Assembly: GCA_053919585.1 (NCBI GenBank)
Contig: CM132790.1
Length of the DNA stretch: 64,000 nt
DNA from: Euprymna scolopes
Lineage: Eukaryota
Direction: 5' to 3' (one strand)
Positions 1 to 24,669 of the stretch are shown one piece after another (the first letter of the stretch is position 1; each line of letters starts with the position of its first letter). The notes beneath the pieces are model-generated. The model ran no database searches. It worked only from the letters and a program-made list of their open reading frames with translations, and was not told the origin of the DNA. The position numbers were made by a program, and so were the translations under genes.

Positions 1-3000
1 TGCTTCTTCTAATTCAATGGAATCTGTTGGAATTGGAACAGCAATTTCTGTTTCCTCTTGCATAATTTCATGTTCTGCAGGAGAATCGATACTGACACCG
101 GAAACAGGCACACCCGTCTCCTCAGTGACTACGATGACGCGGTCTTCATCCAATGTTTCTGGAAGTTCAACTGGTATATTGTCCACTTCGTTTTTCTCAT
201 CAATCACTATTTTTTCATCAATCTCATGTTCGTCTAAAGCTATATTCTCTGTTGGAGTTATGTCTTTCGCAGCAGAAATTAGCATTTCCTCGCCCTCTGT
301 AAGAATCGGTTCGGAAACCTGAGCAAAGTCAACGTCTTCTGATTGTGTGTGTGACGCTTGCGTAATTTCGGGCAAATTTGTGTCGTCAAGTTCGACTTCA
401 AGTGGACATTCGGTAGATTTTATTTCAGAAGGTAAATCAATGTTGTCAGTATCAAGTGTGTCTAGTTGTTTCTCAATATCCTCTACTATTTCACACTGAT
501 CACCAGCATCCACTGTTTCAGTGAAACTTGGTAAGTCCTCGTGAAAGACATTATCTGGCAGGACATTACACTCAGCTTCAACATTATTTTCAGTCTCATT
601 CAAATTAAGGTCAGTCTCCTCAAGATTTCCTAACTGAGTTGTAATTTCATCTTCGCCTTCAGGATCCACCACAATCTCTTCTTCAGTCTCAACTTTAGGT
701 TCACGCTTCTTAAACAGATTTTCGAAGAAACGTTTCACCGGATTCTCTTTCTTTTCATCTGACTTTGATGTTTCTTCAGTTATTTCGATTATTTCTTCAT
801 CGTTCATAGTAATTTCAACACATTCCTCTTCAGGTTTTGTTTGATTATCAGACAATTCTTCCTTTAAAACCAATTCTTCCTCTTCTTCTTCGTCTTCGGG
901 ATCAATTTGAGTATTTTCGAAATTGTTAAGATGCTCTTTTATTTCATTCGAATCTGTTAGATTCTCTTGATTCTCCATCGGGATTATAGAAGGTATTGTG
1001 GATTCTGAAGTCTCTTCAACTTCTGATATCCCAGTTACAGTTATATCTTCTATTTCCCGTTCTACGAAAATTTCACCTTCATCAAATTTTTCCGGAAGAT
1101 GTACACCAACTTCTTCTTCTGGTAAAATATCTTCAAACTCATTTGGCAACTGAACTTCAAATTCGGTGTTTTCTTTTCCTTCTACTCTTTCTTCTGTTTC
1201 TTCTTTTTCTTCAAGTGTTTCTTTGACTTCTTCAAAATCCCTCTCCTCCGTTTTCTCTATCGGATCTCGTTTTTTAAACAGATTATCAAAGAATCGTTTA
1301 ACAGGATTTTCTTTCTTTTCTTTTGGTTTTGGAATTTCGTCAATAATTTCTAACATTTCTTCATTTTCTGTAATCGTTTCAGCTGCTTCGTCATTTGCCA
1401 TTTTATCCTCTATTAATTTTTCAGCTAAAGTCAGTTCATTTTCTTCCACTGCCAGAGTCTCTTCGGCAACACTTGGAATACTTTTAACTTTTGAATCCTC
1501 TTCTGTTGTTATTTCTAAATCATTTTCCTCACTTGCATCTGCTATATCATTTACTGTCATAATTACATCTTCTGCAATTGGTATTGGCTGTTCTGTAGAT
1601 TCGCTAATTTCTAAATCTGAATTCTGACCATTTAATTTATCTTCTAGTTCTGCTTCTTCTAATTCAATGGAATCTGTTGGAATTGGAACAGCAATTTCTG
1701 TTTCCTCTTGCATAATTTCAAGTTCTGCAGGAGAATCGATACTGACACCGGAAACAGGCACACCCGACTCCTCAGTGACTACGATGATGCGGTCTTCATC
1801 CAATGTTTCTGGAAGTTCAACTGGTATATTGTCCACTTCGTTTTTCTCATCAATCACTATTTTTTCATCAATCTCATGTTCGTCTAAAGCTATGTGCTCT
1901 GTTGGAGTTATGTCTTCCCCAGCAGAAATTAGCATTTCCTCGCCCTCTGTAAGAATCGGTTCGGAAACCTGAGCAAAGTCAACGTCTTCTGATTGTGTGT
2001 GTGACGCTTGCGTAATTTCGGGCAAATTTGTGTCGTCAAGTTCGACTTCAAGTGGACATTCGGTAGATTTTATTTCAGAAGGTAAATCAATGTTGTCAGT
2101 ATCAAGTGTGTCTAGTTGTTTCTCAATATCCTCTACTATTTCACACTGATCACCAGCATCCACTGTTTCAGTGAAACTTGGTAAGTCCTCGTGAAAGACA
2201 TTATCTGGTAGGACATTACACTCAGCTTCAACATTATTTTCAGTCTCATTCAAATTAAGGTCAGTCTCCTCAAGATTTCCTAACTGAGTTGTAATTTCAT
2301 CTTCGCCTTCAGGATCCACCACAATCTCTTCTTCAGTCTCAACTTTAGGTTCACGCTTCTTAAACAGATTTTCGAAGAAACGTTTCACCGGATTCTCTTT
2401 CTTTTCATCTGACTTTGATGTTTCTTCAGTTATTTCGATTATTTCTTCATCGTTCATAGTAATTTCAACACATTCCTCTTCAGGTTTTGTTTGATTATCA
2501 GACAATTCTTCCTTTAAAACCAATTCTTCCTCTTCTTCTTCGTCTTCGGGATCAATTTGAGTATTTTCGAAATTGTTAAGATGCTCTTTTATTTCATTCG
2601 AATCTGTTAGATTCTCTTGATTCTCCATCGGGATTATAGAAGGTATTGTGGATTCTGAAGTCTCTTCAACTTCTGATATCCCAGTTACAGTTATATCTTC
2701 TATTTCCCGTTCTACGAAAATTTCACCTTCATCAAATTTTTCCGGAAGATGTACACCAACTTCTTCTTCTGGTAAAATATCTTCAAACTCATTTGGCAAC
2801 TGAACTTCAAATTCGGTGTTTTCTTTTCCTTCTACTCTTTCTTCTGTTTCTTCTTTTTCTTCAAGTGTTTCTTTGACTTCTTCAAAATCCCTCTCCTCCG
2901 TTTTCTCTATCGGATCTCGTTTTTTAAACAGATTATCAAAGAATCGTTTAACAGGATTTTCTTTCTTTTCTTTTGGTTTTGGAATTTCGTCAATAATTTC

Positions 3001-6000
3001 TAACATTTCTTCATTTTCTGTAATCGTTTCAGCTGCTTCGTCATTTGCCATTTTATCCTCTATTAATTCTTCAGCTAAAGTCAGTTCATTTTCTTCCACT
3101 GCCAGAGTCTCTTCGGCAACACTTGGAATACTTTTAACTTTTGAATCCTCTTCTGTTGTTATTTCTAAATCATTTTCCTCACTTGCATCTGCTATATCAT
3201 TTACTGTCATAATTACATCTTCTGCAATTGGTATTGGCTGTTCTGTAGATTCGCTAATTTCTAAATCTGAATTCTGACCATTTAATTTATCTTCTAGTTC
3301 TGCTTCTTCTAATTCAATGGAATCTGTTGGAATTGGAACAGCAATTTCTGTTTCCTCTTGCATAATTTCATGTTCTTCAGGAGAATCGATACTGACACCG
3401 GAAACAGGCACACCCGACTCCTCAGTGACTACGATGACGCGGTCTTCATCCAATGTTTCTGGAAGTTCAACTGGTATATTGTCCACTTCGTTTTTCTCAT
3501 CAATCACTATTTTTTCATCAATCTCATGTTCGTCTAAAGCTATATTCTCTGTTGGAGTTATGTCTTTCGCAGCAGAAATTAGCATTTCCTCGCCCTCTGT
3601 AAGAATCGGTTCGGAAACCTGAGCAAAGTCAACGTCTTCTGATTGTGTGTGTGACGCTTGCGTAATTTCGGGCAAATTTGTGTCGTCAAGTTCGACTTCA
3701 AGTGGACATTCGGTAGATTTTATTTCAGAAGGTAAATCAATGTTGTCAGTATCAAGTGTGTCTAGTTGTTTCTCAATATCCTCTACTATTTCACACTGAT
3801 CACCAGCATCCACTGTTTCAGTGAAACTTGGTAAGTCCTCGTGAAAGACATTATCTGGCAGGACATTACACTCAGCTTCAACATTATTTTCAGTCTCATT
3901 CAAATTAAGGTCAGTCTCCTCAAGATTTCCTAACTGAGTTGTAATTTCATCTTCGCCTTCAGGATCCACCACAATCTCTTCTTCAGTCTCAACTTTAGGT
4001 TCACGCTTCTTAAACAGATTTTCGAAGAAACGTTTCACCGGATTCTCTTTCTTTTCATCTGACTTTGATGTTTCTTCAGTTATTTCGATTATTTCTTCAT
4101 CGTTCATAGTAATTTCAACACATTCCTCTTCAGGTTTTGTTTGATTATCAGACAATTCTTCCTTTAAAACCAATTCTTCCTCTTCTTCTTCGTCTTCGGG
4201 ATCAATTTGAGTATTTTCGAAATTGTTAAGATGCTCTTTTATTTCATTCGAATCTGTTAGATTCTCTTGATTCTCCATCGGGATTATAGAAGGTATTGTG
4301 GATTCTGAAGTCTCTTCAACTTCTGATATCCCAGTTACAGTTATATCTTCTATTTCCCGTTCTACGAAAATTTCACCTTCATCAAATTTTTCCGGAAGAT
4401 GTACACCAACTTCTTCTTCTGGTAAAATATCTTCAAACTCATTTGGCAACTGAACTTCAAATTCGGTGTTTTCTTTTCCTTCTACTCTTTCTTCTGTTTC
4501 TTCTTTTTCTTCAAGTGTTTCTTTGACTTCTTCAAAATCCCTCTCCTCCGTTTTCTCTATCGGATCTCGTTTTTTAAACAGATTATCAAAGAATCGTTTA
4601 ACAGGATTTTCTTTCTTTTCTTTTGGTTTTGGAATTTCGTCAATAATTTCTAACATTTCTTCATTTTCTGTAATCGTTTCAGCTGCTTCGTCATTTGCCA
4701 TTTTATCCTCTATTAATTCTTCAGCTAAAGTCAGTTCATTTTCTTCCACTGCCAGAGTCTCTTCGGCAACACTTGGAATACTTTTAATTTTTGAATCCTC
4801 TTCTGTTGTTATTTCTAAATCATTTTCCTCACTTGCATCTGCTATATCATTTACTGTCATAATTACATCTTCTGCAATTGGTATTGGCTGTTCTGTAGAT
4901 TCGCTAATTTCTAAATCTGAATTCTGACCATTTAATTTATCTTCTAGTTCTGCTTCTTCTAATTCAATGGAATCTGTTGGAATTGGAACAGCAATTTCTG
5001 TTTCCTCTTGCATAATTTCATGTTCTGCAGGAGAATCGATACTGACACCGGAAACAGGCACACCCGACTCCTCAGTGACTACGATGATGCGGTCTTCATC
5101 CAATGTTTCTGGAAGTTCAACTGGTATATTGTCCACTTCGTTTTTCTCATCAATCACTATTTTTTCATCAATCTCATGTTCGTCTAAAGCTATATTCTCT
5201 GTTGGAGTTATGTCTTCCCCAGCAGAAATTAGCATTTCCTCGCCCTCTGTAAGAATCGGTTCGGAAACCTGAGCAAAGTCAACGTCTTCTGATTGTGTGT
5301 GTGACGCTTGCGTAATTTCGGGCAAATTTGTGTCGTCAAGTTCGACTTCAAGTGGACATTCGGTAGATTTTATTTCAGAAGGTAAATCAATGTTGTCAGT
5401 ATCAAGTGTGTCTAGTTGTTTCTCAATATCCTCTACTATTTCACACTGATCACCAGCATCCACTGTTTCAGTGAAACTTGGTAAGTCCTCGTGAAAGACA
5501 TTATCTGGCAGAACATTACACTCAGCTTCAACATTATTTTCAGTCTCATTCAAATTAAGGTCAGTCTCCTCAAGATTTCCTAACTGAGTTGTAATTTCAT
5601 CTTCGCCTTCAGGATCCACCACAATCTCTTCTTCAGTCTCAACTTTAGGTTCACGCTTCTTAAACAGATTTTCGAAGAAACGTTTCACCGGATTCTCTTT
5701 CTTTTCATCTGACTTTGATGTTTCTTCAGTTATTTCGATTATTTCTTCATCGTTCATAGTAATTTCAACACATTCCTCTTCAGGTTTTGTTTGATTATCA
5801 GACAATTCTTCCTTTAAAACCAATTCTTCCTCTTCTTCTTCGTCTTCGGGATCAATTTGAGTATTTTCGAAATTGTTAAGATGCTCTTTTATTTCATTCG
5901 AATCTGTTAGATTCTCTTGATTCTCCATCGGGATTATAGAAGGTATTGTGGATTCTGAAGTCTCTTCAACTTCTGATATCCCAGTTACAGTTATATCTTC

Positions 6001-9000
6001 TATTTCCCGTTCTACGAAAATTTCACCTTCATCAAATTTTTCCGGAAGATGTACACCAACTTCTTCTTCTGGTAAAATATCTTCAAACTCATTTGGCAAC
6101 TGAACTTCAAATTCGGTGTTTTCTTTTCCTTCTACTCTTTCTTCTGTTTCTTCTTTTTCTTCAAGTGTTTCTTTGACTTCTTCAAAATCCCTCTCCTCCG
6201 TTTTCTCTATCGGATCTCGTTTTTTAAACAGATTATCAAAGAATCGTTTAACAGGATTTTCTTTCTTTTCTTTTGGTTTTGGAATTTCGTCAATAATTTC
6301 TAACATTTCTTCATTTTCTGTAATCGTTTCAGCTGCTTCGTCATTTGCCATTTTATCCTCTATTAATTCTTCAGCTAAAGTCAGTTCATTTTCTTCCACT
6401 GCCACAGTCTCTTCGGCAACACTTGGAATACTTTTAATTTTTGAATCCTCTTCTGTTGTTATTTCTAAATCATTTTCCTCACTTGCATCTGCTATATCAT
6501 TTACTGTCATAATTACATCTTCTGCAATTGGTATTGGCTGTTCTGTAGATTCGCTAATTTCTAAATCTGAATTCTGACCATTTAATTTATCTTCTAGTTC
6601 TGCTTCTTCTAATTCAATGGAATCTGTTGGAATTGGAACAGCAATTTCTGTTTCCTCTTGCATAATTTCAAGTTCTGCAGGAGAATCGATACTGACACCG
6701 GAAACAGGCACACCCGTCTCCTCAGTGACTACAATGACGCGGTCTTCATCCAATGTTTCTGGAAGTTCAACTGGTATATTGTCCACTTCGTTTTTCTCAT
6801 CAATCACTATTTTTTCATCAATCTCATGTTCGTCTAAAGCTATGTGCTCTGTTGGAGTTATGTCTTCCGCAGCAGAAATTAGCATTTCCTCGCCCTCTGT
6901 AAGAATCGGTTCGGAAACCTGAGCAAAGTCAACGTCTTCTGATTGTGTGTGTGACGCTTGCGTAATTTCGGGCAAATTTGTGTCGTCAAGTTCGACTTCA
7001 AGTGGACATTCGGTAGATTTTATTTCAGAAGGTAAATCAATGTTGTCAGTATCAAGTGTGTCTAGTTGTTTCTCAATATCCTCTACTATTTCACACTGAT
7101 CACCAGCATCCACTGTTTCAGTGAAACTTGGTAAGTCCTCGTGAAAGACATTATCTGGCAGAACATTACACTCAGCTTCAACATTATTTTCAGTCTCATT
7201 CAAATTAAGGTCAGTCTCCTCAAGATTTCCTAACTGAGTTGTAATTTCATCTTCGCCTTCAGGATCCACCACAATCTCTTCTTCAGTCTCAACTTTAGGT
7301 TCACGCTTCTTAAACAGATTTTCGAAGAAACGTTTCACCGGATTCTCTTTCTTTTCATCTGACTTTGATGTTTCTTCAGTTATTTCGATTATTTCTTCAT
7401 CGTTCATAGTAATTTCAACACATTCCTCTTCAGGTTTTGTTTGATTATCAGACAATTCTTCCTTTAAAACCAATTCTTCCTCTTCTTCTTCGTCTTCGGG
7501 ATCAATTTGAGTATTTTCGAAATTGTTAAGATGCTCTTTTATTTCATTCGAATCTGTTAGATTCTCTTGATTCTTCATCGGGATTATAGAAGGTATTGTG
7601 GATTCTGAAGTCTCTTCAACTTCTGATATCCCAGTTACAGTTATATCTTCTATTTCCCGTTCTACGAAAATTTCACCTTCATCAAATTTTTCCGGAAGAT
7701 GTACACCAACTTCTTCTTCTGGTAAAATATCTTCAAACTCATTTGGCAACTGAACTTCAAATTCGGTGTTTTCTTTTCCTTCTACTCTTTCTTCTGTTTC
7801 TTCTTTTTCTTCAAGTGTTTCTTTGACTTCTTCAAAATCCCTCTCCTCCGTTTTCTCTATCGGATCTCGTTTTTTAAACAGATTATCAAAGAATCGTTTA
7901 ACAGGATTTTCTTTCTTTTCTTTTGGTTTTGGAATTTCGTCAATAATTTCTAACATTTCTTCATTTTCTGTAATCGTTTCAGCTGCTTCGTCATTTGCCA
8001 TTTTATCCTCTATTAATTCTTCAGCTAAAGTCAGTTCATTTTCTTCCACTGCCAGAGTCTCTTCGGCAACACTTGGAATACTTTTAATTTTTGAATCCTC
8101 TTCTGTTGTTATTTCTAAATCATTTTCCTCACTTGCATCTGCTATATCATTTACTGTCATAATTACATCTTCTGCAATTGGTATTGGCTGTTCTGTAGAT
8201 TCGCTAATTTCTAAATCTGAATTCTGACCATTTAATTTATCTTCTAGTTCTGCTTCTTCTAATTCAATGGAATCTGTTGGAATTGGAACAGCAATTTCTG
8301 TTTCCTCTTGCATAATTTCAAGTTCTGCAGGAGAATCGATACTGACACCGGAAACAGGCACACCCGTCTCCTCAGTGACTACAATGACGCGGTCTTCATC
8401 CAATGTTTCTGGAAGTTCAACTGGTATATTGTCCACTTCGTTTTTCTCATCAATCACTATTTTTTCATCAATCTCATGTTCGTCTAAAGCTATGTGCTCT
8501 GTTGGAGTTATGTCTTCCGCAGCAGAAATTAGCATTTCCTCGCCCTCTGTAAGAATCGGTTCGGAAACCTGAGCAAAGTCAACGTCTTCTGATTGTGTGT
8601 GTGACGCTTGCGTAATTTCGGGCAAATTTGTGTCGTCAAGTTCGACTTCAAGTGGACATTCGGTAGATTTTATTTCAGAAGGTAAATCAATGTTGTCAGT
8701 ATCAAGTGTGTCTAGTTGTTTCTCAATATCCTCTACTATTTCACACTGATCACCAGCATCCACTGTTTCAGTGAAACTTGGTAAGTCCTCGTGAAAGACA
8801 TTATCTGGTAGGACATTACACTCAGCTTCAACATTATTTTCAGTCTCATTCAAATTAAGGTCAGTCTCCTCAAGATTTCCTAACTGAGTTGTAATTTCAT
8901 CTTCGCCTTCAAGATCCACCACAATCTCTTCTTCAGTCTCAACTTTAGGTTCACGCTTCTTAAACAGATTTTCGAAGAAACGTTTCACCGGATTCTCTTT

Positions 9001-12000
9001 CTTTTCATCTGACTTTGATGTTTCTTCAGTTATTTCGATTATTTCTTCATCGTTCATAGTAATTTCAACACATTCCTCTTCAGGTTTTGTTTGATTATCA
9101 GACAATTCTTCCTTTAAAACCAATTCTTCCTCTTCTTCTTCGTCTTCGGGATCAATTTGAGTATTTTCGAAATTGTTAAGATGCTCTTTTATTTCATTCG
9201 AATCTGTTAGATTCTCTTGATTCTCCATCGGGATTATAGAAGGTATTGTGGATTCTGAAGTCTCTTCAACTTCTGATATCCCAGTTACAGTTATATCTTC
9301 TATTTCCCGTTCTACGAAAATTTCACCTTCATCAAATTTTTCCGGAAGATGTACACCAACTTCTTCTTCTGGTAAAATATCTTCAAACTCATTTGGCAAC
9401 TGAACTTCAAATTCGGTGTTTTCTTTTCCTTCTACTCTTTCTTCTGTTTCTTCTTTTTCTTCAAGTGTTTCTTTGACTTCTTCAAAATCCCTCTCCTCCG
9501 TTTTCTCTATCGGATCTCGTTTTTTAAACAGATTATCAAAGAATCGTTTAACAGGATTTTCTTTCTTTTCTTTTGGTTTTGGAATTTCGTCAATAATTTC
9601 TAACATTTCTTCATTTTCTGTAATCGTTTCAGCTGCTTCGTCATTTGCCATTTTATCCTCTATTAATTCTTCAGCTAAAGTCAGTTCATTTTCTTCCACT
9701 GCCAGAGTCTCTTCGGCAACACTTGGAATACTTTTAATTTTTGAATCCTCTTCTGTTGTTATTTCTAAATCATTTTCCTCACTTGCATCTGCTATATCAT
9801 TTACTGTCATAATTACATCTTCTGCAATTGGTATTGGCTGTTCTGTAGATTCGCTAATTTCTAAATCTGAATTCTGACCATTTAATTTATCTTCTAGTTC
9901 TGCTTCTTCTAATTCAATGGAATTTGTTGGAATTGGAACAGCAATTTCTGTTTCCTCTTGCATAATTTCAAGTTCTGCAGGAGAATCGATACTGACACCG
10001 GAAACAGGCACACCCGTCTCCTCAGTGACTACAATGACGCGGTCTTCATCCAATGTTTCTGGAAGTTCAACTGGTATATTGTCCACTTCGTTTTTCTCAT
10101 CAATCACTATTTTTTCATCAATCTCATGTTCGTCTAAAGCTATGTGCTCTGTTGGAGTTATGTCTTCCGCAGCAGAAATTAGCATTTCCTCGCCCTCTGT
10201 AAGAATCGGTTCGGAAACCTGAGCAAAGTCAACGTCTTCTGATTGTGTGTGTGACGCTTGCGTAATTTCGGGCAAATTTGTGTCGTCAAGTTCGACTTCA
10301 AGTGGACATTCGGTAGATTTTATTTCAGAAGGTAAATCAATGTTGTCAGTATCAAGTATGTCTAGTTGTTTCTCAATATCCTCTACTATTTCACACTGAT
10401 CACCAGCATCCACTGTTTCAGTGAAACTTGGTAAGTCCTCGTGAAAGACATTATCTGGTAGGACATTACACTCAGCTTCAACATTATTTTCAGTCTCATT
10501 CAAATTAAGGTCAGTCTCCTCAAGATTTCCTAACTGAGTTGTAATTTCATCTTCGCCTTCAGGATCCACCACAATCTCTTCTTCAGTCTCAACTTTAGGT
10601 TCACGCTTCTTAAACAGATTTTCGAAGAAACGTTTCACCGGATTCTCTTTCTTTTCATCTGACTTTGATGTTTCTTCAGTTATTTCGATTATTTCTTCAT
10701 CGTTCATAGTAATTTCAACACATTCCTCTTCAGGTTTTGTTTGATTATCAGACAATTCTTCCTTTAAAACCAATTCTTCCTCTTCTTCTTCGTCTTCGGG
10801 ATCAATTTGAGTATTTTCGAAATTGTTAAGATGCTCTTTTATTTCATTCGAATCTGTTAGATTCTCTTGATTCTCCATCGGGATTATAGAAGGTATTGTG
10901 GATTCTGAAGTCTCTTCAACTTCTGATATCCCAGTTACAGTTATATCTTCTATTTCCCGTTCTACGAAAATTTCACCTTCATCAAATTTTTCCGGAAGAT
11001 GTACACCAACTTCTTCTTCTGGTAAAATATCTTCAAACTCATTTGGCAACTGAACTTCAAATTCGGTGTTTTCTTTTCCTTCTACTCTTTCTTCTGTTTC
11101 TTCTTTTTCTTCAAGTGTTTCTTTGACTTCTTCAAAATCCCTCTCCTCCGTTTTCTCTATCGGATCTCGTTTTTTAAACAGATTATCAAAGAATCGTTTA
11201 ACAGGATTTTCTTTCTTTTCTTTTGGTTTTGGAATTTCGTCAATAATTTCTAACATTTCTTCATTTTCTGTAATCGTTTCAGCTGCTTCGTCATTTGCCA
11301 TTTTATCCTCTATTAATTCTTCAGCTAAAGTCAGTTCATTTTCTTCCACTGCCAGAGTCTCTTCGGCAACACTTGGAATACTTTTAATTTTTGAATCCTC
11401 TTCTGTTGTTATTTCTAAATCATTTTCCTCACTTGCATCTGCTATATCATTTACTGTCATAATTACATCTTCTGCAATTGGTATTGGCTGTTCTGTAGAT
11501 TCGCTAATTTCTAAATCTGAATTCTGACCATTTAATTTATCTTCTAGTTCTGCTTCTTCTAATTCAATGGAATCTGTTGGAATTGAAACAGCAACTTCTG
11601 TTTCCTCTTGCATAATTTCATGTTCTGCAGGAGAATCGATACTGACACCGGAAACAGGCACACCCGACTCCTCAGTGACTACGATGACGCGGTCTTCATC
11701 CAATGTTTCTGGAAGTTCAACTGGTATATTGTCCACTTCGTTTTTCTCATCAATCACTATTTTTTCATCAATCTCATGTTCGTCTAAAGCTATATTCTCT
11801 GTTGGAGTTATGTCTTTCGCAGCAGAAATTAGCATTTCCTCGCCCTCTGTAAGAATCGGTTCGGAAACCTGAGCAAAGTCAACGTCTTCTGATTGTGTGT
11901 GTGACGCTTGCGTAATTTCGGGCAAATTTGTGTCGTCAAGTTCGACTTCAAGTGGACATTCGGTAGATTTTATTTCAGAAGGTAAATCAATGTTGTCAGT

Positions 12001-15000
12001 ATCAAGTGTGTCTAGTTGTTTCTCAATATCCTCTACTATTTCACACTGATCACCAGCATCCACTGTTTCAGTGAAACTTGGTAAGTCCTCGTGAAAGACA
12101 TTATCTGGCAGGACATTACACTCAGCTTCAACATTATTTTCAGTCTCATTCAAATTAAGGTCAGTCTCCTCAAGATTTCCTAACTGAGTTGTAATTTCAT
12201 CTTCGCCTTCAGGATCCACCACAATCTCTTCTTCAGTCTCAACTTTAGGTTCACGCTTCTTAAACAGATTTTCGAAGAAACGTTTCACCGGATTCTCTTT
12301 CTTTTCATCTGACTTTGATGTTTCTTCAGTTATTTCGATTATTTCTTCATCGTTCATAGTAATTTCAACACATTCCTCTTCAGGTTTTGTTTGATTATCA
12401 GACAATTCTTCCTTTAAAACCAATTCTTCCTCTTCTTCTTCGTCTTCGGGATCAATTTGAGTATTTTCGAAATTGTTAAGATGCTCTTTTATTTCATTCG
12501 AATCTGTTAGATTCTCTTGATTCTCCATCGGGATTATAGAAGGTATTGTGGATTCTGAAGTCTCTTCAACTTCTGATATCCCAGTTACAGTTATATCTTC
12601 TATTTCCCGTTCTACGAAAATTTCACCTTCATCAAATTTTTCCGGAAGATGTACACCAACTTCTTCTTCTGGTAAAATATCTTCAAACTCATTTGGCAAC
12701 TGAACTTCAAATTCGGTGTTTTCTTTTCCTTCTACTCTTTCTTCTGTTTCTTCTTTTTCTTCAAGTGTTTCTTTGACTTCTTCAAAATCCCTCTCCTCCG
12801 TTTTCTCTATCGGATCTCGTTTTTTAAACAGATTATCAAAGAATCGTTTAACAGGATTTTCTTTCTTTTCTTTTGGTTTTGGAATTTCGTCAATAATTTC
12901 TAACATTTCTTCATTTTCTGTAATCGTTTCAGCTGCTTCGTCATTTGCCATTTTATCCTCTATTAATTCTTCAGCTAAAGTCAGTTCATTTTCTTCCACT
13001 GCCAGAGTCTCTTCGGCAACACTTGGAATACTTTTAATTTTTGAATCCTCTTCTGTTGTTATTTCTAAATCATTTTCCTCACTTGCATCTGCTATATCAT
13101 TTACTGTCATAATTACATCTTCTGCAATTGGTATTGGCTGTTCTGTAGATTCGCTAATTTCTAAATCTGAATTCTGACCATTTAATTTATCTTCTAGTTC
13201 TGCTTCTTCTAATTCAATGGAATCTGTTGGAATTGGAACAGCAATTTCTGTTTCCTCTTGCATAATTTCATGTCCTGCAGGAGAATCGATACTGACACCG
13301 GAAACAGGCACACCCGACTCCTCAGTGACTACGATGATGCGGTCTTCATCCAATGTTTCTGGAAGTTCAACTGGTATATTGTCCACTTCGTTTTTCTCAT
13401 CAATCACTATTTTTTCATCAATCTCATGTTCGTCTAAAGCTATATTCTCTGTTGGAGTTATGTCTTCCCCAGCAGAAATTAGCATTTCCTCGCCCTCTGT
13501 AAGAATCGGTTCGGAAACCTGAGCAAAGTCAACGTCTTCTGATTGTGTGTGTGACGCTTGCGTAATTTCGGGCAAATTTGTGTCGTCAAGTTCGACTTCA
13601 AGTGGACATTCGGTAGATTTTATTTCAGAAGGTAAATCAATGTTGTCAGTATCAAGTGTGTCTAGTTGTTTCTCAATATCCTCTACTATTTCACACTGAT
13701 CACCAGCATCCACTGTTTCAGTGAAACTTGGTAAGTCCTCGTGAAAGACATTATCTGGCAGAACATTACACTCAGCTTCAACATTATTTTCAGTCTCATT
13801 CAAATTAAGGTCAGTCTCCTCAAGATTTCCTAACTGAGTTGTAATTTCATCTTCGCCTTCAGGATCCACCACAATCTTTTCTTCAGTCTCAACTTTAGGT
13901 TCACGCTTCTTAAACAGATTTTCGAAGAAACGTTTCACCGGATTCTCTTTCTTTTCATCTGACTTTGATGTTTCTTCAGTTATTTCGATTATTTCTTCAT
14001 CGTTCATAGTAATTTCAACACATTCCTCTTCAGGTTTTGTTTGATTATCAGACAATTCTTCCTTTAAAACCAATTCTTCCTCTTCTTCTTCGTCTTCGGG
14101 ATCAATTTGAGTATTTTCGAAATTGTTAAGATGCTCTTTTATTTCATTCGAATCTGTTAGATTCTCTTGATTCTCCATCGGGATTATAGAAGGTATTGTG
14201 GATTCTGAAGTCTCTTCAACTTCTGATATCCCAGTTACAGTTATATCTTCTATTTCCCGTTCTACGAAAATTTCACCTTCATCAAATTTTTCCGGAAGAT
14301 GTACACCAACTTCTTCTTCTGGTAAAATATCTTCAAACTCATTTGGCAACTGAACTTCAAATTCGGTGTTTTCTTTTCCTTCTACTCTTTCTTCTGTTTC
14401 TTCTTTTTCTTCAAGTGTTTCTTTGACTTCTTCAAAATCCCTCTCCTCCGTTTTCTCTATCGGATCTCGTTTTTTAAACAGATTATCAAAGAATCGTTTA
14501 ACAGGATTTTCTTTCTTTTCTTTTGGTTTTGGAATTTCGTCAATAATTTCTAACATTTCTTCATTTTCTGTAATCGTTTCAGCTGCTTCGTCATTTGCCA
14601 TTTTATCCTCTATTAATTCTTCAGCTAAAGTCAGTTCATTTTCTTCCACTGCCAGAGTCTCTTCGGCAACACTTGGAATACTTTTAATTTTTGAATCCTC
14701 TTCTGTTGTTATTTCTAAATCATTTTCCTCACTTGCATCTGCTATATCATTTACTGTCATAATTACATCTTCTGCAATTGGTATTGGCTGTTCTGTAGAT
14801 TCGCTAATTTCTAAATCTGAATTCTGACCATTTAATTTATCTTCTAGTTCTGCTTCTTCTAATTCAATGGAATCTGTTGGAATTGAAACAGCAACTTCTG
14901 TTTCCTCTTGCATAATTTCATGTTCTGCAGGAGAATCGATACTGACACCGGAAACAGGCACACCCGTCTCCTCAGTGACTACGATGACGCGGTCTTCATC

Positions 15001-18000
15001 CAATGTTTCTGGAAGTTCAACTGGTATATTGTCCACTTCGTTTTTCTCATCAATCACTATTTTTTTATCAATCTCATGTTCTTCTAAAGCTATGTGCTCT
15101 GTTGGAGTTATGTCTTCCGCAGCAGAAATTAGCATTTCCTCGCTCTCTGTAAGAATCGGTTCGGAAACCTGAGCAAAGTCAACGTCTTCTGATTGTGTGT
15201 GTGACGCGTGCGTAATTTCGGGCAAATTTGTGTCGTCAAGTTCGACTTCAAGTGGACATTCGGTAGATTTTATTTCAGAAGGTAAATCAATGTTGTCAGT
15301 ATCAAGTGTGTCTAGTTGTTTCTCAATATCCTCTACTATTTCACACTGATCACCAGCATCCACTGTTTCAGTGAAACTTGGTAAGTCCTCGTGAAAGACA
15401 TTATCTGGTAGGACATTACACTCAGCTTCAACATTATTTTCAGTCTCATTCAAATTAAGGTCAGTCTCCTCAAGATTTCCTAACTGAGTTGTAATTTCAT
15501 CTTCGCCTTCAGGATCCACCACAATCTCTTCTTCAGTCTCAACTTTAGGTTCACGCTTCTTAAACAGATTTTCGAAGAAACGTTTCACCGGATTCTCTTT
15601 CTTTTCATCTGACTTTGATGTTTCTTCAGTTATTTCGATTATTTCTTCATCGTTCATAGTAATTTCAACACATTCCTCTTCAGGTTTTGTTTGATTATCA
15701 GACAATTCTTCCTTTAAAACCAATTCTTCCTCTTCTTCTTCGTCTTCGGGATCAATTTGAGTATTTTCGAAATTGTTAAGATGCTCTTTTATTTCATTCG
15801 AATCTGTTAGATTCTCTTGATTCTCCATCGGGATTATAGAAGGTATTGTGGATTCTGAAGTCTCTTCAACTTCTGATATCCCAGTTACAGTTATATCTTC
15901 TATTTCCCGTTCTACGAAAATTTCACCTTCATCAAATTTTTCCGGAAGATGTACACCAACTTCTTCTTCTGGTAAAATATCTTCAAACTCATTTGGCAAC
16001 TGAACTTCAAATTCGGTGTTTTCTTTTCCTTCTACTCTTTCTTCTGTTTCTTCTTTTTCTTCAAGTGTTTCTTTGACTTCTTCAAAATCCCTCTCCTCCG
16101 TTTTCTCTATCGGATCTCGTTTTTTAAACAGATTATCAAAGAATCGTTTAACAGGATTTTCTTTCTTTTCTTTTGGTTTTGGAATTTCGTCAATAATTTC
16201 TAACATTTCTTCATTTTCTGTAATCGTTTCAGCTGCTTCGTCATTTGCCATTTTATCCTCTATTAATTCTTCAGCTAAAGTCAGTTCATTTTCTTCCACT
16301 GCCAGAGTCTCTTCGGCAACACTTGGAATACTTTTAATTTTTGAATCCTCTTCTGTTGTTATTTCTAAATCATTTTCCTCACTTGCATCTGCTATATCAT
16401 TTACTGTCATAATTACATCTTCTGCAATTGGTATTGGCTGTTCTGTAGATTCGCTAATTTCTAAATCTGAATTCTGACCATTTAATTTATCTTCTAGTTC
16501 TGCTTCTTCTAATTCAATGGAATCTGTTGGAATTGAAACAGCAACTTCTGTTTCCTCTTGCATAATTTCATGTTCTGCAGGAGAATCGATACTGACACCG
16601 GAAACAGGCACACCCGACTCCTCAGTGACTACGATGACGCGGTCTTCATCCAATGTTTCTGGAAGTTCAACTGGTATATTGTCCACTTCGTTTTTCTCAT
16701 CAATCACTATTTTTTCATCAATCTCATGTTCGTCTAAAGCTATATTCTCTGTTGGAGTTATGTCTTTCGCAGCAGAAATTAGCATTTCCTCGCCCTCTGT
16801 AAGAATCGGTTCGGAAACCTGAGCAAAGTCAACGTCTTCTGATTGTGTGTGTGACGCTTGCGTAATTTCGGGCAAATTTGTGTCGTCAAGTTCGACTTCT
16901 AGTGGACATTCGGTAGATTTTATTTCAGAAGGTAAATCAATGTTGTCAGTATCAAGTGTGTCTAGTTGTTTCTCAATATCCTCTACTATTTCACACTGAT
17001 CACCAGCATCCACTGTTTCAGTGAAACTTGGTAAGTCCTCGTGAAAGACATTATCTGGCAGGACATTACACTCAGCTTCAACATTATTTTCAGTCTCATT
17101 CAAATTAAGGTCAGTCTCCTCAAGATTTCCTAACTGAGTTGTAATTTCATCTTCGCCTTCAGGATCCACCACAATCTCTTCTTCAGTCTCAACTTTAGGT
17201 TCACGCTTCTTAAACAGATTTTCGAAGAAACGTTTCACCGGATTCTCTTTCTTTTCATCTGACTTTGATGTTTCTTCAGTTATTTCGATTATTTCTTCAT
17301 CGTTCATAGTAATTTCAACACATTCCTCTTCAGGTTTTGTTTGATTATCAGACAATTCTTCCTTTAAAACCAATTCTTCCTCTTCTTCTTCGTCTTCGGG
17401 ATTAATTTGAGTATTTTCGAAATTGTTAAGATGCTCTTTTATTTCATTCGAATCTGTTAGATTCTCTTGATTCTCCATCGGGATTATAGAAGGTATTGTG
17501 GATTCTGAAGTCTCTTCAACTTCTGATATCCCAGTTACAGTTATATCTTCTATTTCCCGTTCTACGAAAATTTCACCTTCATCAAATTTTTCCGGAAGAT
17601 GTACACCAACTTCTTCTTCTGGTAAAATATCTTCAAACTCATTTGGCAACTGAACTTCAAATTCGGTGTTTTCTTTTCCTTCTACTCTTTCTTCTGTTTC
17701 TTCTTTTTCTTCAAGTGTTTCTTTGACTTCTTCAAAATCCCTCTCCTCCGTTTTCTCTATCGGATCTCGTTTTTTAAACAGATTATCAAAGAATCGTTTA
17801 ACAGGATTTTCTTTCTTTTCTTTTGGTTTTGGAATTTCGTCAATAATTTCTAACATTTCTTCATTTTCTGTAATCGTTTCAGCTGCTTCGTCATTTGCCA
17901 TTTTATCCTCTATTAATTCTTCAGCTAAAGTCAGTTCATTTTCTTCCACTGCCAGAGTCTCTTCGGCAACACTTGGAATACTTTTAATTTTTGAATCCTC

Positions 18001-19042
18001 TTCTGTTGTTATTTCTAAATCATTTTCCTCACTTGCATCTGCTATATCATTTACTGTCATAATTACATCTTCTGCAATTGGTATTGGCTGTTCTGTAGAT
18101 TCGCTAATTTCTAAATCTGAATTCTGACCATTTAATTTATCTTCTAGTTCTGCTTCTTCTAATTCAATGGAATCTGTTGGAATTGAAACAGCAACTTCTG
18201 TTTCCTCTTGCATAATTTCATGTTCTGCAGGAGAATCGATACTGACACCGGAAACAGGCACACCCGACTCCTCAGTGACTACGATGACGCGGTCTTCATC
18301 CAATGTTTCTGGAAGTTCAACTGGTATATTGTCCACTTCGTTTTTCTCATCAATCACTATTTTTTTATCAATCTCATGTTCGTCTAAAGCTATGTGCTCT
18401 GTTGGAGTTATGTCTTCCGCAGCAGAAATTAGCATTTCCTCGCCCTCTGTAAGAATCGGTTCGGAAACCTGAGCAAAGTCAACGTCTTCTGATTGTGTGT
18501 GTGACGCTTGCGTAATTTCGGGCAAATTTGTGTCGTCAAGTTCGACTTCAAGTGGACATTCGGTAGATTTTATTTCAGAAGGTAAATCAATGTTGTCAGT
18601 ATCAAGTGTGTCTAGTTGTTTCTCAATATCCTCTACTATTTCACACTGATCACCAGCATCCACTGTTTCAGTGAAACTTGGTAAGTCCTCGTGAAAGACA
18701 TTATCTGGAAAGACATTACACTCAGCTTCAACATTATTTTCAGTCTCATTCAAATTAAGGTCAGTCTCCTCAAGATTTCCTAACTGAGTTGTAATTTCAT
18801 CTTCGCCTTCAGGATCCACCACAATCTCTTCTTCAGTCTCAACTTTAGGTTCACGCTTCTTAAACAGATTTTCGAAGAAACGTTTCACCGGATTCTCTTT
18901 CTTTTTATCTGACTTTGGTTTTTCTTCAGTTATTTCGGTTATTTCTTCATCGTTCATAGTAATTTCAACACATTCCTCTTCAGGTTTTGTTTGATTATCA
19001 GACAATTCTTCCTTTAAAACCAATTCTTCCTCTTCCTCTTCG
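1..19042 (-). repeat. Coding tandem array: 1,650-bp (550-aa) unit x about 11.5, continuing past the window start
   Basis: Units start at 1, 1651, 3301 ... 18151 and differ by only a few substitutions each, with no indels. Similarity ends at about 19042. Confidence 0.98.
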
Positions 19043-22000
19043 TATGCTGGTTTGTCTATGGAATCAATTTGAATATTTTTAATTTGCGATATTTCATCTT
19101 CACTAAGTTGTAACTTATTTACAACTTCAGATACATCTGTCTCTTTACTTTCGACCTTTGTTTTTTGTTTTTGAAACAAGTTATTGAAGAGACGACTTAC
19201 TGGGGTTTCAGTTCTCTTTTTGGCTGCAGTCTTCTCTTGAACCTCTATTATTTCTACGTTCTCCTCTTTGCGTTCTTCAACTTCATCAGCTTTATTTTTT
19301 TCTTTATTTTCGTCATTCAATTTTTGTCCGTCTTTTGTTGTTTTCTCGACGTTTTCCATTGATGTTTTCTTAAAATCCATTTCGTTGTCCGTTACTTTTT
19401 TTCCATTACGAACGTCTTGGTCGACTAGAGTACTTTTATCCTTCGCAATCATCTCTGCAGTCATGTGTGTTTCTTCTTCCGAAAATGCAGACATTTTTGC
19501 TTCCGAAGTCTGGATAGGATGTTTATCTACTGATTCTATGTCTTGTATGTTTGTATTTTCGCCGGCAATCTTGGTTTTGATCACTTCATCTGTCAGTTCA
19601 ACATCTAGTTCAATAACAGATTCAATACTCTGTTCACTCCCTTCTTCTGTTCCGTCACTATCTTCAATGTTTTTATTTATTTTATTTTTTTCCACAAACT
19701 TTTCCATTTTTGCCGGGATATTTTCGAAAGTATTGGTTTGTTCGATTAATTGCTCCTCACTAGTTATCCTCTTTCCATCACCTGAAGTAATATCTTGTGT
19801 TGGGATTATATTTTCTTTGTCAGAAATTGGCAATCCTTCAGATTCGGCAATTATCGGATCCAAAACCTGAGTTAAATTGGTGTCTTCTGATTCTTTTTGT
19901 GGCAATTGGGGAGTTTCGCCGAAAGCCGGATTCTGAATTTCGATTTCAATTTGCGTCTTATTCGTCTCGTTTTTCGTTGGTAAAATAATGTCGTCGTCGC
20001 ATTCATGTGTTTTGGTTTCAATATCTTCAATTACTTCACTTTCATCACGTACTGTTGAAACATGAACGGCAGACATATTTTCTCCTGTTTCAACATTCTT
20101 TTGAATCGGCACTTGAATTTCGTTTTCTTGAACGGGGGAAATCTTTACTTCAGTTCCGACGTTGGGCAATTGAATTTCTTTTTTTTGGTTGGCAGAAAGC
20201 TTTTCTTCAGTTTCGTCATGGGCTGCAATCGGCATTTGGATTTCGCTTTCTTGAACAGGGCACATCTTTTCTTCAATTTGGACATTGGGTTCAACCGGCA
20301 TTTTAATTTCGTTTTCTTGAATGGCAGGAAGCTTTTCTTCAGTTTCGATATTGGCTTCAATCGGTATTTTGATTTTGCTTTCTTGCCCATAACAAATCTT
20401 TTCTTCGTTGGGTTCAATCTGTAGTTGAATTTCGCTTTGTTGAACGGCAGAAATAGTTTGTTCAGTTTCGATATTGGATTCAACCGACACTGAAATTTCG
20501 TTTTCTTGAACGGCAGAAATAATTTGTCCAGTTTCGATATTGGATTCAGCTGAGTCTTGAATGTCGTTTTCTTGAACGACAGGAATCTTCTCTTCAGTTT
20601 CAATCTTTGGATCAGGTTTCTTAAGCAATTTACTGAAGAAACGACTAACTGGACTCTCCTTTTTATACCCTATTGGATTTGCTTTTTCTTCTATTACTTC
20701 TATTTTATCTTCCTTATCTTTATCATCAGGAGGCACTTCTATTTCTATTTGCTCTTCTAGCAAATTATCATTCAAACCGGTTTCATTTTCTTCTGTCACT
20801 GTGGCATTGATGTCGGCTGGAATATTTACTAAATCATTTTTAACTTCGACCAAATCTTTCGCCTGATCTTCTGAAGAAATATTATCTTCAACGTTTATAT
20901 GTTCATTATTATTTGCAGTCTCTTCTGATGATTCGCAAATATTCGTTTCAGAAGTCTGTGCAATATCAATATCTTCAAATTCTGTTGCTTCTGTTTGAGG
21001 GATCGCTTTGTCTGGGTCAACATCCGTAACACGTCCACGTTTTCTATTTCCTTCTGTTGGTTCTGAGATATTTGGCGGAGTAGGTTCTTCTTTATGTAAT
21101 GCTTTTGTCTCTACAATACACCCATCTTCATTATCTGTCAAGTCGGTCAGATTTTCAGGATTATCATTTGACTGGGCTGGTGCTTCAAGTTCCTTATTTT
21201 GATCGTCAAAAGTCTTTACTTCAATCTCGACTGGGAGTTCGCGTTTTTTAAACAATTTATCAAAGAAACGACTGACTGGACTTTCTTTCTTAGTTTCTAT
21301 TGGCTTTGGTGTTTCCTCTTTTATTTTTATCACTTCATCCCGGTCCTTGACATCTTCAATAGTTTCTTCCTTCTCGTACAGATCTTCTGGATGATTTTCG
21401 ACGGAAACTGTCTCATTTTCTTTCCTAGGCACGATTACTTCCTTTCTATGTTGTTTGTCTGAATCTTTAGAAACTTTATAATTGTCGTCAGCAACTTTTT
21501 CATCATTGCAAACGAAGACGAATGACTCATTATTTGTATTTGGATATTCTTCCGATTTCAAATCGGTTTCAGTTTGATCCTTTGTATTTTCAGTTACTGA
21601 GACTTCTATCTTTTTGCAAGTTGAATTCACATCATCGCCATCTTCATTCGTTTCATCAGGTAACGCGTCCACTGTTGTTAATTCCACCATTTGGCTTTCT
21701 TCTTTTAAATTGTCCTCACCTGACTGTGTTTTGATTTCTTCTGTGGCAGGCGAATATTTTAATGGACCAGTTGCAATATTCTTTGTCACATCTACATTTT
21801 TAGAAAATATCATTTGTAACTTCCTACGAATCTTCGAGAATTTTTTCAGTCCCGGTGTCTTATTAGCAGACACAACAGTGACATCTATGTCGTCCTGGCT
21901 TTCATTGGAAAAAGATGAAGACGGTGATTTTAAACCAGAATCATCAGAGATATTCTTTTCAGAACACATAGATTCTGATTCTTCCCCAGAGTCAAGCTTG

Positions 22001-24137
22001 AAAGGTTCGTTTCTGAACACTGAAGATCGCTGTTCGGTTAGTTCGTCTGATTCCTCATCCGTCTGATCCGTCTTGCCGATCGCTTCTAGTGATAACTCTA
22101 GGGAATCAACTTCCATGTCAGTATCTTCATTGTCACTGATTTGCTTCAAAGTGATATCGGCCATTTCCTGTTGGTCATCTGGTTCCAGATGAGATTTGTC
22201 AGGGTTTATCAAGAAGAAGGGATCCGCTTTTATCTTTTGATTTAGTTTGGTCTTTTCATTCTCGTTCGTTTCAATCTCGTCTTCTGACATTGTTTCAGCA
22301 TCATCGGTAATCGTGCGATTTAACTCTAACGAGTCCGTTTCCATGCTACTCGAATCATTTTCAGAATATTGGGATTCTTCGATCGTTTCAAGCAAAGGAA
22401 CATGGCGTTTCAAATCACTTTCTTCGTTTCGTATAAATGGTTTGACTGGTTCTGTTGGACATTCAATAGTACTTTCATTTAAAGAGTCAGTCTCCACTTT
22501 TTCCACCGGACTTTTAATATAAGGCTGTGTTTCCACATCTACAGGATTTTGAATGTAGTGTTGGGTTTTGACTTCCTCTGTCGGATTTTGAATAGAAGGT
22601 TGTGTTTCAACTTGATTTGCCAATATTTGAATGGGAGGTTGTGTTTTAGCTGTTTCTACCGGGTTTTGACTAGCAGGTTGTGTTTCGATTTCTTCTCCCT
22701 GATTTTGAACCGAAGGTTGTTCTACGCCTTCTTCTGTCGGGATTTCAACTGCTGTTTTTGTCTGAACATCATCTACCGGTATTTGACTGGAAGGTTTTAT
22801 TTCAATTTCATGAATTATAGGTTTCTCTTGCTCTGCCATTGAAGGTTTAGGACTTGTTGGTATAAGTGAATCTTCTGACTCAGGAGTTGACTTGCTCAGT
22901 TGTTCGATTGCATTTTGGGGTCTTTGTATTTTTGACGGGCTTTTTGAATCGGGTGGCAAATCTTTTTCTTCTGAGAGCTTTTCTGAGGTCACACAATCCT
23001 GAAAAAACTCTTTTATTTCGGATTCAGGAATTACATATTCTACTGACTTGCCTTCGCTTGTCAGAGAATCTCCCGTATCATTTTGGTCGCTTACCTCTCC
23101 ATCATCAGTTGAAACCGAATTTGGAGAATGTGGTATAATTTTTTTATGAATTGGTTTAAAGTCATCAATTTCTACTGGATCTGCGACCAGACGTGGAGCC
23201 AATGTTTCGAAGTCTTCTTCTTGTTGCCTCTTGTGTAAATCTTCAAGCTTCATCTTACATTCTTCAGGGAAATTCTCTAGACTTTCATGTTCGTCGGTGC
23301 TCGTGATTGTGCCAGAATTATTGTAAATGTCAGGAGATCCTTGTCTTGTGCTATCGCCTGATTCAAGTTTTGTAAACGTACTCGAGCTAATTTTAGAACA
23401 TGGTGAATTCCGTTCCGAGGAATAAATATCTAAGTTTGAAACCGGACTCGGATTCTCAGATTCTGTTCTGAGACTCGAAAGTGGCCAATCATAATAATTG
23501 TCTGCATTCATAGTTTCCGATTCGTCATCTGTGACATGTTGGCTTTCGTATTTTTCAGGCACATCAGACGATATTTGACTTGCTGGAGTCTCAGATGGCG
23601 ATTTGATTACCGATGTTGGAAAATTGTTTTGCCCTAAGATTGGTGTATTATCGTCACTTTGTGTACTTTCTGTGGAAGATAACGCATCATCATCTTTGGG
23701 ATGAAGCATCTTTGCTGCATCTTCTGTATGATTCTTGTCGCTGTCTTGGTTTTTATCACCCGTGATGATATCCATGGATGTTGATTTGTCAGGAGGTTTT
23801 TCTACTTCCGGCAAGGGATACTCTTGCGAAAACAAATTTTTTTCTCGTTCTGTAACGGAAGGTTTAGGACTTCTTGGTATGCGGGAAGCTTTCGACTCGA
23901 GATTCGACTTGCTTGGTTGTTCGGTTGCGGTTTGCGGTATTTGAGACAGATTATGAGAATCTAGCGGCAAATCTTTTGTTGCGTCTTCTTTTGGGTCATT
24001 CTTTGTTAGAGGTTTATCCGGAGCAGGTTTTTGTTTGATGGGAAGACGACTTTTAGATGATGATTCCGGACTATCGGATGAATCCGACTTTTTCCGTGAA
24101 GGGTAAACTGGACTGCCTTCAGGATCGGTCGGCGTCA
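1..24137 (-). CDS. Giant coding exon (>=24.1 kb, >=8,045 codons, 3'-partial) of an acidic, repeat-rich, probably disordered protein with periodic basic amphipathic helix motifs; orthology unknown
   Basis: The minus-strand acceptor reads tgcttttacttttttacag|TG ACG CCG ACC (CAG at 24140-24138, phase 1). The frame starts TPTDPEGSPVYPSRKKSDSS... and is the same frame at position 1 (...SIELEEA). Every segment I translated by hand was stop-free, and no terminated long minus ORF appears in the track, which fits a frame running off the edge. The repeat periods (1650, 66, 39 bp) are multiples of 3. There are no TE or microsatellite insertions. Confidence 0.92.
20050..20600 (-). repeat. Degenerate 66-bp (22-aa) coding repeat, about 8 copies, consensus ~ETEEKLPAVQENEIQMPVEPNI
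   Basis: The anchor ttcttga-like word recurs at about 20126, 20248, 20314, 20380, 20437, 20503 and 20569. The copies translate in the giant-exon frame. Confidence 0.85.
22510..22860 (-). repeat. Degenerate 39-bp (13-aa) coding repeat, about 9 copies (~ETQPSIQNPTEEV)
   Basis: ggttg recurs at about 22598, 22637, 22676 and 22715 (39-bp period), in frame with the giant exon. Confidence 0.8.

Positions 24138-24601: not shown

Positions 24602-24606
<5 letters not shown>

Positions 24607-24666
<60 letters not shown>
24607..24666. repeat. (AG)n microsatellite. Others lie at about 28930 (GT), 29985-30065 (TTC/TTA), 32850, 37132, 45150 and 60186 (TA), 45693 and 50444 (AG), 46843 (CCAA), 49820 (CA), 51490 (TTA)
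   Basis: Directly visible simple repeats. Confidence 0.98.

Positions 24667-24669
<3 letters not shown>

Follow-up and report, generated by a model that had tools for sequence, protein, structure and literature searches.

We describe a giant coding exon on the minus strand of a 64,000-nt stretch of Euprymna scolopes DNA (contig CM132790.1 of assembly GCA_053919585.1; the whole stretch is called the window below, and positions are counted from its first letter). The product of this exon contains many copies of a 17-residue motif, KKENPVKRFF[DE]NLFKKR (motif peptide for reference: KKENPVKRFFENLFKKREPK). We conclude that the exon belongs to a real, expressed gene, that its giant product is polyanionic and largely disordered, and that the motif is most likely a short linear binding module within this protein. 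The best-supported reading of that module, which we hold tentatively, is that it serves as a multivalent membrane anchor.

A fuzzy scan of the minus-strand frame found 26 copies of the motif in the window, namely 12 A copies, 11 B copies and three diverged copies, with the A and B copies alternating at distances of 188 and 362 aa. The scan thereby recovered every copy listed in a preliminary description of the window, which had also given this alternation, and the positions listed there proved correct, but on the minus strand. Positions 703–753(-) translate as KKENPVKRFFENLFKKR (copy A) and positions 1267–1317(-) as KKENPVKRFFDNLFKKR (copy B); read on the plus strand, the same positions yield no such peptide and a translation full of stops. 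Beginning with the first in the window, the A copies (KKENPVKRFFENLFKKR) lie on the minus strand at 18853–18903, 17203–17253, 15553–15603, 13903–13953, 12253–12303, 10603–10653, 8953–9003, 7303–7353, 5653–5703, 4003–4053, 2353–2403 and 703–753, and the B copies (KKENPVKRFFDNLFKKR), likewise beginning with the first, at 17767–17817, 16117–16167, 14467–14517, 12817–12867, 11167–11217, 9517–9567, 7867–7917, 6217–6267, 4567–4617, 2917–2967 and 1267–1317. The three diverged copies, also reported earlier, were confirmed on the same strand at 21241–21291 (N1, KKESPVSRFFDKLFKKR), 20614–20664 (N2, KKESPVSRFFSKLLKKP) and 19165–19215 (N3, RTETPVSRLFNNLFQKQ). Comparison of the 51 nt of the A and B copies bears out the eight synonymous codons and single E/D change that had been noted, since the nine differences comprise eight silent changes and one GAA/GAT (E/D) change. 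The flanks are, as claimed, much more diverged than the motif: a BLAST search of the 550-aa unit against itself returned only the self-match, the two halves having no detectable similarity outside the motif.

Most of these copies are not independent of one another. The 1650-bp units that carry the A and B copies differ pairwise by only 1–15 nt (99.1–99.9% identity), and 23 of the 26 copies in the window are therefore very recent duplicates, or homogenisation products, of two motifs, which do not count as independent evidence on selection. When DNA from the same contig was added, the array was found to continue beyond the window, with 46 motif copies in an open frame of 14,038 codons; the whole frame comprises 18 near-identical units, and towards the C-terminus there are six more diverged copies (PNENPIKEFFTNIFIKK, KKENPVKLFFDNLFKKR, KKENPIKRFFNNLFKKR, KKENPIKRFFENLFKKR, KPGNPVKRFFDNFFKKR and KKENPVIRFFNKLFKKP). 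The independent sample for selection is accordingly about 11 diverged copies. Spacings between the older, diverged copies are 76, 104, 174, 209, 213, 239, 403, 448 and 483 aa, whereas the strict 188/362 periodicity is found only in the young, 99%-identical units and is a by-product of their recent amplification. The suggestion that the motif acts as a molecular ruler is not supported, because the older copies are spaced so irregularly, from 76 to 483 aa apart.

The recurrence of the motif is not due to chance. A degenerate DNA pattern for P[VI]xRFFxxLFKK had 43 matches in the giant exon and only three elsewhere in the 5.9-Gb genome, and a reversed control pattern had none genome-wide. The three matches outside the exon, two of them T-rich and of low complexity and the third within a 42-codon open reading frame (ORF), were rejected as true copies. 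We also considered whether the array might be an assembly artefact. This was ruled out, since 34 codons vary between units in a mosaic fashion and independent RNA contigs reproduce both the unit and its junction with unique sequence. RNA word depth in repeat-unit contigs (18900–19043) versus the unique N-terminal part (19042–24138) was 79x in run X1 and about 11x in run X10, compared with 18 units in the assembly; copy-number differences, a collapsed assembly, shorter transcripts or uneven coverage are possible sources of this mismatch.

Three residues, P5, F10 and K16, never vary among the 11 independent copies; E3, F9 and F14 persist in ten of them and K1, R8, L13 and K15 in nine, and a single conserved residue is encoded by up to six different codons. 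Pairwise among these copies, the proportion of silent sites that differ (pS) is 0.5–0.83, which is saturated, whereas the corresponding value for amino-acid-changing sites (pN) is 0.02–0.13. Old, diverged versions of the entire unit are present in the C-terminal region. When the core A-to-B segment was globally aligned with its diverged counterpart, the spacers were 36% identical, whereas each motif matched at 15 of 17 positions, and the motifs were the best-scoring 17-residue windows of the alignment. NG86 estimates for the core against the old diverged unit gave a nonsynonymous rate (dN) of 0.069 and a synonymous rate (dS) of 1.6 for the motif, and a dN of 0.553 and a dS of 1.3 for the spacer. 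Given the similar dS, the motif is about 8 times more constrained than the spacers. Hence the purifying selection at the protein level that had been claimed from the A and B copies holds for the motif. The preliminary description had also proposed that conservation of motif and spacers be compared in orthologues; in the old diverged paralogous units used here instead, the motif is the better kept of the two.

The young units show how freely the remainder of the chain changes. Among 17 in-register young units (window positions 1–18903 and the adjoining DNA), 34 codons vary, and because 29 of the 34 variable codons change the amino acid and only five are silent, the spacers drift nearly neutrally or faster. 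None of the 29 replacement codons falls within the motif, against 1.8 expected, a difference that is not significant.

One reading on which this pattern of conservation bears is nuclear import, with the motif as a bipartite nuclear localisation signal (KK-x12-KKR). Six of the 11 independent copies do have a basic pair that a 12-residue linker separates from five residues of which at least three are basic. However, this arrangement is lacking in the other five, such a signal would leave the invariant P5 and F10 and the conserved F9, L13 and F14 of the linker unexplained, and 46 signals in a single 1.6-MDa protein would be pointless. We consider this reading very unlikely.

The conserved module extends beyond the 17 residues and can be written as [E-I-x-E-I-I-E-E]-x(3-6)-K-K-E-N-P-V-K-R-F-F-x-N-L-F-K-K-R-[ED]-P-K-[VI]-E, with the E-I-x-E-I-I-E-E stretch ahead of nearly every copy. 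An Asn-Pro start and a K-K-R-[ED]-Pro end are classical helix-capping and stop features, and the hydrophobic pattern described for the motif, V6, F9, F10, L13 and F14 after P5, is present. AlphaFold2 (AF2), given the 11-copy alignment, predicted a helix from P5 to F14 (P20–F29 of the modelled segment) with a block pLDDT of 84. With the whole unit as a single sequence, mean pLDDT was 40 and both motifs were again predicted as short helices: residues 1–10 of the unit, in motif A, had the highest block confidence, motif B lay inside a second raised stretch, and pLDDT was below 50 for the rest. On a helical wheel, V6, F9, F10, L13 and F14 span an arc of 140 degrees flanked by K7 and K16, with the variable residue 11 at the centre of the polar face, which is a class-A-like layout. 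The helical hydrophobic moment, whose computation had been proposed earlier, is 0.68–0.82 (Eisenberg muH) in nine of the 11 copies, within the top 0.3–1.7% of shuffles. A HeliQuest-type discriminant placed 51 segments of the protein above the lipid-binding threshold, and 44 of these 51 are motif copies, with a discriminant D of 1.7–2.75. The idea of a Pro-capped basic amphipathic helix is thus supported by both the moment and the locally highest confidence of the AF2 helix. Its high moment, positive net charge and predicted helicity would place the motif in the class of lipid-binding amphipathic helices, a functional class and not one of homologues.

The moment and discriminant scans also picked out three basic-aromatic islands distinct from the motif, the sole other strong candidates for amphipathic basic segments: GLKKFSKIRRKLQMIFSK (aa 764–800, window 21772–21882(-)), KSKKGLFNFVPVLKRAFGFKK (aa 13517–13549 of the exon) and KPWYQKVKEFFSSKKSK (aa 13700–13721). 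Just upstream of motif B, unit residues 314–349 (for example, window ~17857–17964(-)) were predicted by AF2 as a 36-residue acidic helix, AEETLAVEENELTLAEELIEDKMANDEAAETITENEE, with a pLDDT of about 55; this helix might pair with the basic motif helix.

The frame that carries the motif belongs to a transcribed gene. Window positions 1–24171(-) form a single open frame of 8057 codons, of which positions 1–24137(-), up to the acceptor ttttttacag|TG, are the part of the giant coding exon that lies in the window, as delimited by the open frame and an RNA contig. This 5219-nt contig, from run X1, spans window positions 19042–24138 and then continues at position 32195. Since both boundaries are canonical (acceptor ttttttacag|TG; donor ATGGCCG|gtaag), the giant exon is transcribed and spliced across an 8-kb intron (24138–32194(-)). 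The upstream exon (32195–32313(-)) is represented by at least 119 nt in RNA, ends in CAAAATGGCCG and has no Pfam match. Sequence of the giant exon occurs in runs X1–X4 and X15–X18, and pieces of it are also contained in poly-A RNA run X10. Poly-A runs X21 and X22 had no reads on the exon, which suggests that its expression is tissue-restricted. At the 3′ end, the frame reaches CCAG|gtaaga 26 codons ahead of its stop, and the 757 nt after the stop are absent from the RNA runs that contain the giant exon. For these reasons we read the exon as internal, with a length of 42,003 nt (G000:C8:71840135-71882137, ~14,000 codons) and phase 1 at both ends.

An ATG in the upstream exon is a possible start codon, from which the protein would begin M-A-V-T-P-T-D-P-E-G. 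This N-terminus is relevant to whether the protein might be a polyprotein precursor, cut at dibasic KK, KR or KKR sites to release FFENLF or ENPVKRFFENLF, in the manner of molluscan neuropeptide and antimicrobial-peptide precursors with acidic spacers. The peptide is flanked by KK and KKR, with an internal KR in the A and B copies, and the spacers are acidic and fast-evolving, as such a precursor would require. Nevertheless, no signal peptide was found, either at the N-terminus read from RNA (MAVTPTDPEG) or in the upstream open frame, which is also hydrophilic. Moreover, the internal KR is replaced by SR, KE, KL or IR in six of the 11 copies, there is no Gly for amidation, and spacers of 75–480 aa in a chain of 14,000 aa are unlike those of any known prohormone. 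Of the functions weighed here, release of peptides is the least credible.

The exon product has 14,001 residues, a mass of 1.59 MDa and a pI of 4.05, with 31% D+E and 7.6% K+R, and lies well on the disordered side of a charge-hydropathy plot. The motif is therefore, as had been proposed, a basic island within an acidic, disordered protein. Within one unit, 14 of 39 K/R and six of 16 F residues fall in its two motifs. It is conceivable that the basic helices are ‘stickers’ for the acidic spacers of the protein itself, within or between molecules, leading to compaction, gelation or coacervation, in which case the matrix may buffer Ca2+. The concentration of basic charge in islands within so acidic a chain, the share of K/R and F residues held by the motifs, and the high copy number would all suit a sticker-and-spacer layout. 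Electrostatics alone, however, would call for neither the invariant Pro cap nor the exact FF..LF register nor the constant length, and the conservation pattern is that of a specific structure. We regard this self-association as improbable.

Searches for relatives of the protein were almost uniformly negative. Pfam (hmmscan) had no family, even at E<=10, in the unit, in the 1756-aa N-terminal part, in the 1973-aa C-terminal part or in motif pieces of 40–261 aa. A homologue search with region 900–1800 of the 8057-aa frame, among proteins of 4431–14100 aa, found none. With aa 12040–13239, which include six motif copies, as the query, a phmmer search of 1.84 billion representatives found nothing but a single fragment of 145 aa; this derives from a Logan contig of the same species, 99.2–99.5% identical in DNA, and as a query it returned only itself. 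A pattern scan of JGI metagenomes gave 13 matches, none of them an orthologue, and a literature search on the motif strings and on a giant exon together with cephalopod found nothing. We conclude that the protein is undescribed and apparently lineage-restricted, and that the motif is apparently a new sequence family of a known functional kind.

To place the motif among structures, we compared a profile of the 11 copies with all Protein Data Bank (PDB) sequences, which gave three weak matches (2LUG, E 0.16; 3LRP, E 0.22; 1YMM, E 0.9). The two nearest analogues are experimentally established membrane-binding helices and, weak as the matches are, they agree with the analogy to membrane binding that had been drawn from the window. 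The first is the central alpha2 helix of 18.5-kDa myelin basic protein (MBP; ENPVVHFFKNI, PDB 2LUG, the 1YMM match being to the same segment), which has E-N-P-V-x-x-F-F-x-N-[IL] in common with the motif and begins its helix at the same Pro. In water, segment P82–I90 of MBP is disordered; on lipid or micelles, it becomes an amphipathic helix that anchors to the membrane (PMC3702573). MBP is, however, a small, strongly basic, vertebrate-only protein with a single such segment followed by a PxxP SH3 ligand, whereas the protein described here is a 1.6-MDa chain of pI 4.05 with 46 copies followed by KKR-[ED]-P-K. The likeness is a local one of 11 residues, the Myelin_MBP Pfam profile did not match, and the small size and strong basicity of that family are absent; the resemblance (E 0.16) probably represents convergence and not homology. 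The second analogue is the N-terminal helix of Plasmodium Arf1, VSRLFNRLFQKK (PDB 3LRP, E 0.22); copy N3 (VSRLFNNLFQKQ) shares 11 of 12 residues with this helix, and the pattern F/L-x-x-L-F-x-K-K-[ED] is common to the Arf family and the motif. The Arf N-terminal helix is membrane-inserting. Unlike the motif helices, which are internal, not lipidated and without a GTPase domain, it is N-terminal, myristoylated and coupled to a GTPase switch, and no Arf or Ras Pfam match was found in the scanned parts of the exon. A further resemblance came from metagenome contigs (JGI and others), in which an unrelated small predicted membrane protein has PIKRFFRNLFKKG directly after a transmembrane helix; by sequence, this is a convergent 12-mer at a membrane interface and not homology. 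Although statistically not strong, the MBP, Arf1 and metagenomic resemblances all point toward a membrane-interface helix and not to common descent.

As a membrane anchor, the motif would work as follows. Each copy, bounded by its Asn-Pro N-cap and its KK(R)-[ED]-Pro stop, would form an amphipathic helix of about 10 residues, P-V-K-R-F-F-x-N-L-F, with V6, F9, F10, L13 and F14 on the non-polar face and Lys/Arg at the boundary between polar and non-polar faces. The helix would be disordered in solution, and would fold on, and partly insert into, an anionic membrane surface. Single contacts would be weak, and the 46 copies would jointly provide avidity, with the acidic spacers of ~75–480 residues kept off the membrane as charged loops. 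We infer both the ligand, a membrane, and the avidity mechanism.

The MARCKS effector domain and the WSK segments of AKAP12/AKAP5, to which the motif had been likened, embody the same concept: basic-aromatic islands, set in a scaffold that is acidic and disordered, bind anionic membrane and calmodulin. The comparison stands insofar as the motif, too, is basic and its host protein acidic and disordered; assignment to the MARCKS or WSK families is not supported, since neither WSK (PF03832) nor MARCKS (PF02063) matched at E<=10 in the unit, the N- and C-terminal parts or the motif pieces. The MARCKS island carries about +13, compared with +5 for the motif, the MARCKS/WSK segment is extended and not a Pro-capped helix, and there are one to three islands and not 46 copies. 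A Met-Gly myristoylation site of the MARCKS type is also missing: the sole start seen in RNA is M-A-V-T, the 5′ end of the mRNA not being established. Judged by sequence, then, none of the testable features that define the MARCKS, WSK, MBP or Arf families is present.

The same comparison raises the possibility of Ca2+/calmodulin as a ligand of the motif, bound either on its own or in competition with membrane, in which case the protein would be a calmodulin sink or a Ca2+-switchable tether. The basic segments of MARCKS, MBP and AKAP12/AKAP5 bind both lipid and calmodulin, and the motif is likewise a basic amphipathic helix with bulky aromatic anchors. In its helix of only ~10–12 residues, however, the anchors do not follow the 1-10 or 1-14 spacing known from classical sites, and there is no IQ or other Pfam match. 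An ESMFold2 complex of calmodulin, four Ca and a 44-aa motif B segment scored 0.01 (mark 0.34), which is no evidence either way. We think calmodulin binding improbable, if slightly less so than a sticker role.

Several observations weigh against membrane anchoring. The PDB matches are not statistically significant, and basic amphipathic helices generally resemble such peptides. The net charge per copy is just +4 to +6, a helix of 10–12 residues is short for stable insertion, and the flanks and spacers are strongly acidic and would oppose binding to an anionic bilayer. The support is computational and comes from paralogous copies of one species. Finally, lipid binding alone does not account for the conserved E3, N4, N12 and [ED]-P-K tail, which would fit recognition of a protein partner. 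The motif could therefore be a docking site, a short linear motif (SLiM) or molecular recognition feature (MoRF), for a folded protein: cytoskeletal (actin or tubulin), an adaptor, or the protein's own C-terminal module, with the giant acting as a multivalent scaffold. A lipid surface would not read these polar positions; in addition, the acidic-hydrophobic E-I-x-E-I-I-E-E stretch precedes nearly every copy, and a helix sharply bounded by Pro at both ends is typical of MoRFs. No known motif family in Pfam matches, however, and any likeness to WH2/thymosin, FxxLF or the AP2 beta-appendage motif would be no more than partial. Docking to a protein partner is on balance unlikely, though it has appreciable weight.

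In overall architecture, the protein is closest to AHNAK and the giant ankyrins, in which giant single exons with homogenised long tandem units encode largely unstructured scaffolds. The likeness lies in a very long single exon, near-identical tandem units and an unstructured scaffold. There is no relation in sequence or domains, no ankyrin, ZU5 or PDZ domain having been found in the scanned parts of the exon, and at 42 kb and 31% acidic residues the exon described here is larger and its product far more acidic.

Downstream of the giant exon, at a distance of 6.6 kb, lies an exon encoding an F-box (G000:C8:71833251-71833429(-); PF12937, E 5.8e-9; PF00646, E 1.8e-6). It starts after tttctttctttttttaacgcag|TT, in phase 1 and without an ATG of its own, and is in frame with the putative donor of the giant exon. 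Because the giant exon is symmetric (phase 1/phase 1), the F-box exon is also in frame with exon 1, the upstream exon with the ATGGCCG donor end, a combination that would read MAVTDDVTVDESYENALRHVFAFLD..., a typical start of an F-box protein. The predicted candidate junctions are ...CATCCTCTTCCAG to TTACGGATGACG for giant exon to F-box, and ATGGCCG to TTACGGATG for exon skipping. The giant exon may thus be a cassette within an F-box gene, a suggestion made from sequence that we consider rather doubtful; phase agreement alone has a one-in-three chance. In a fuller and slightly more doubtful form, the phase 1/phase 1 cassette would lie in the first intron of the F-box gene, and the long isoform would be a 1.6-MDa lineage-restricted subunit of an SCF ubiquitin ligase, with a polyanionic arm at its N-terminus that the new amphipathic-helix motif would attach to membranes at 46 points. 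We know of no described counterpart to such an architecture. A regular-expression search of 160 kb downstream for FBXL-type leucine-rich repeat (LRR) exons gave nothing convincing. Further downstream of the F-box exon, G000:C8:71826970-71829869(-) is a ~3-kb tandem array of a short repeat open in several frames (KISLTCIAI.../NMPYLYCYK...), probably a satellite.

The remainder of the window contains sequences that resemble mobile elements. The intron upstream of the giant exon contains an LTR-retroelement fragment at window positions 25235–27187(+), with a 651-codon frame that matches Integrase_H2C2 (E 1.4e-18) and rve (E 1.2e-10). The frames at 34311–36264(-) and 40639–41518(-) resemble by eye a LINE-type endonuclease/reverse transcriptase and a mariner-type transposase. 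Among minus-strand frames of at least 60 aa in the rest of the window, no exon, whether of giant-ankyrin type or bearing another domain, was recognisable by eye; these frames resemble transposon fragments or low-complexity sequence.

If the reading of the motif as a membrane anchor within this giant protein is true, the exon would be among the largest single coding exons, and its product among the largest polypeptides, described. A fast-evolving acidic disordered chain with one strongly conserved 17-residue module would be a natural example of a selected SLiM amid near-neutral spacers, and would provide a model, open to testing, of how an intrinsically disordered giant tethers membranes through many contacts of low affinity. 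The link to an F-box, and hence to a ubiquitin ligase, would, if true, give the giant protein a defined biochemical output. Since it has no homologue in any database searched, the protein may be an innovation of the cephalopod lineage that standard annotation has missed.

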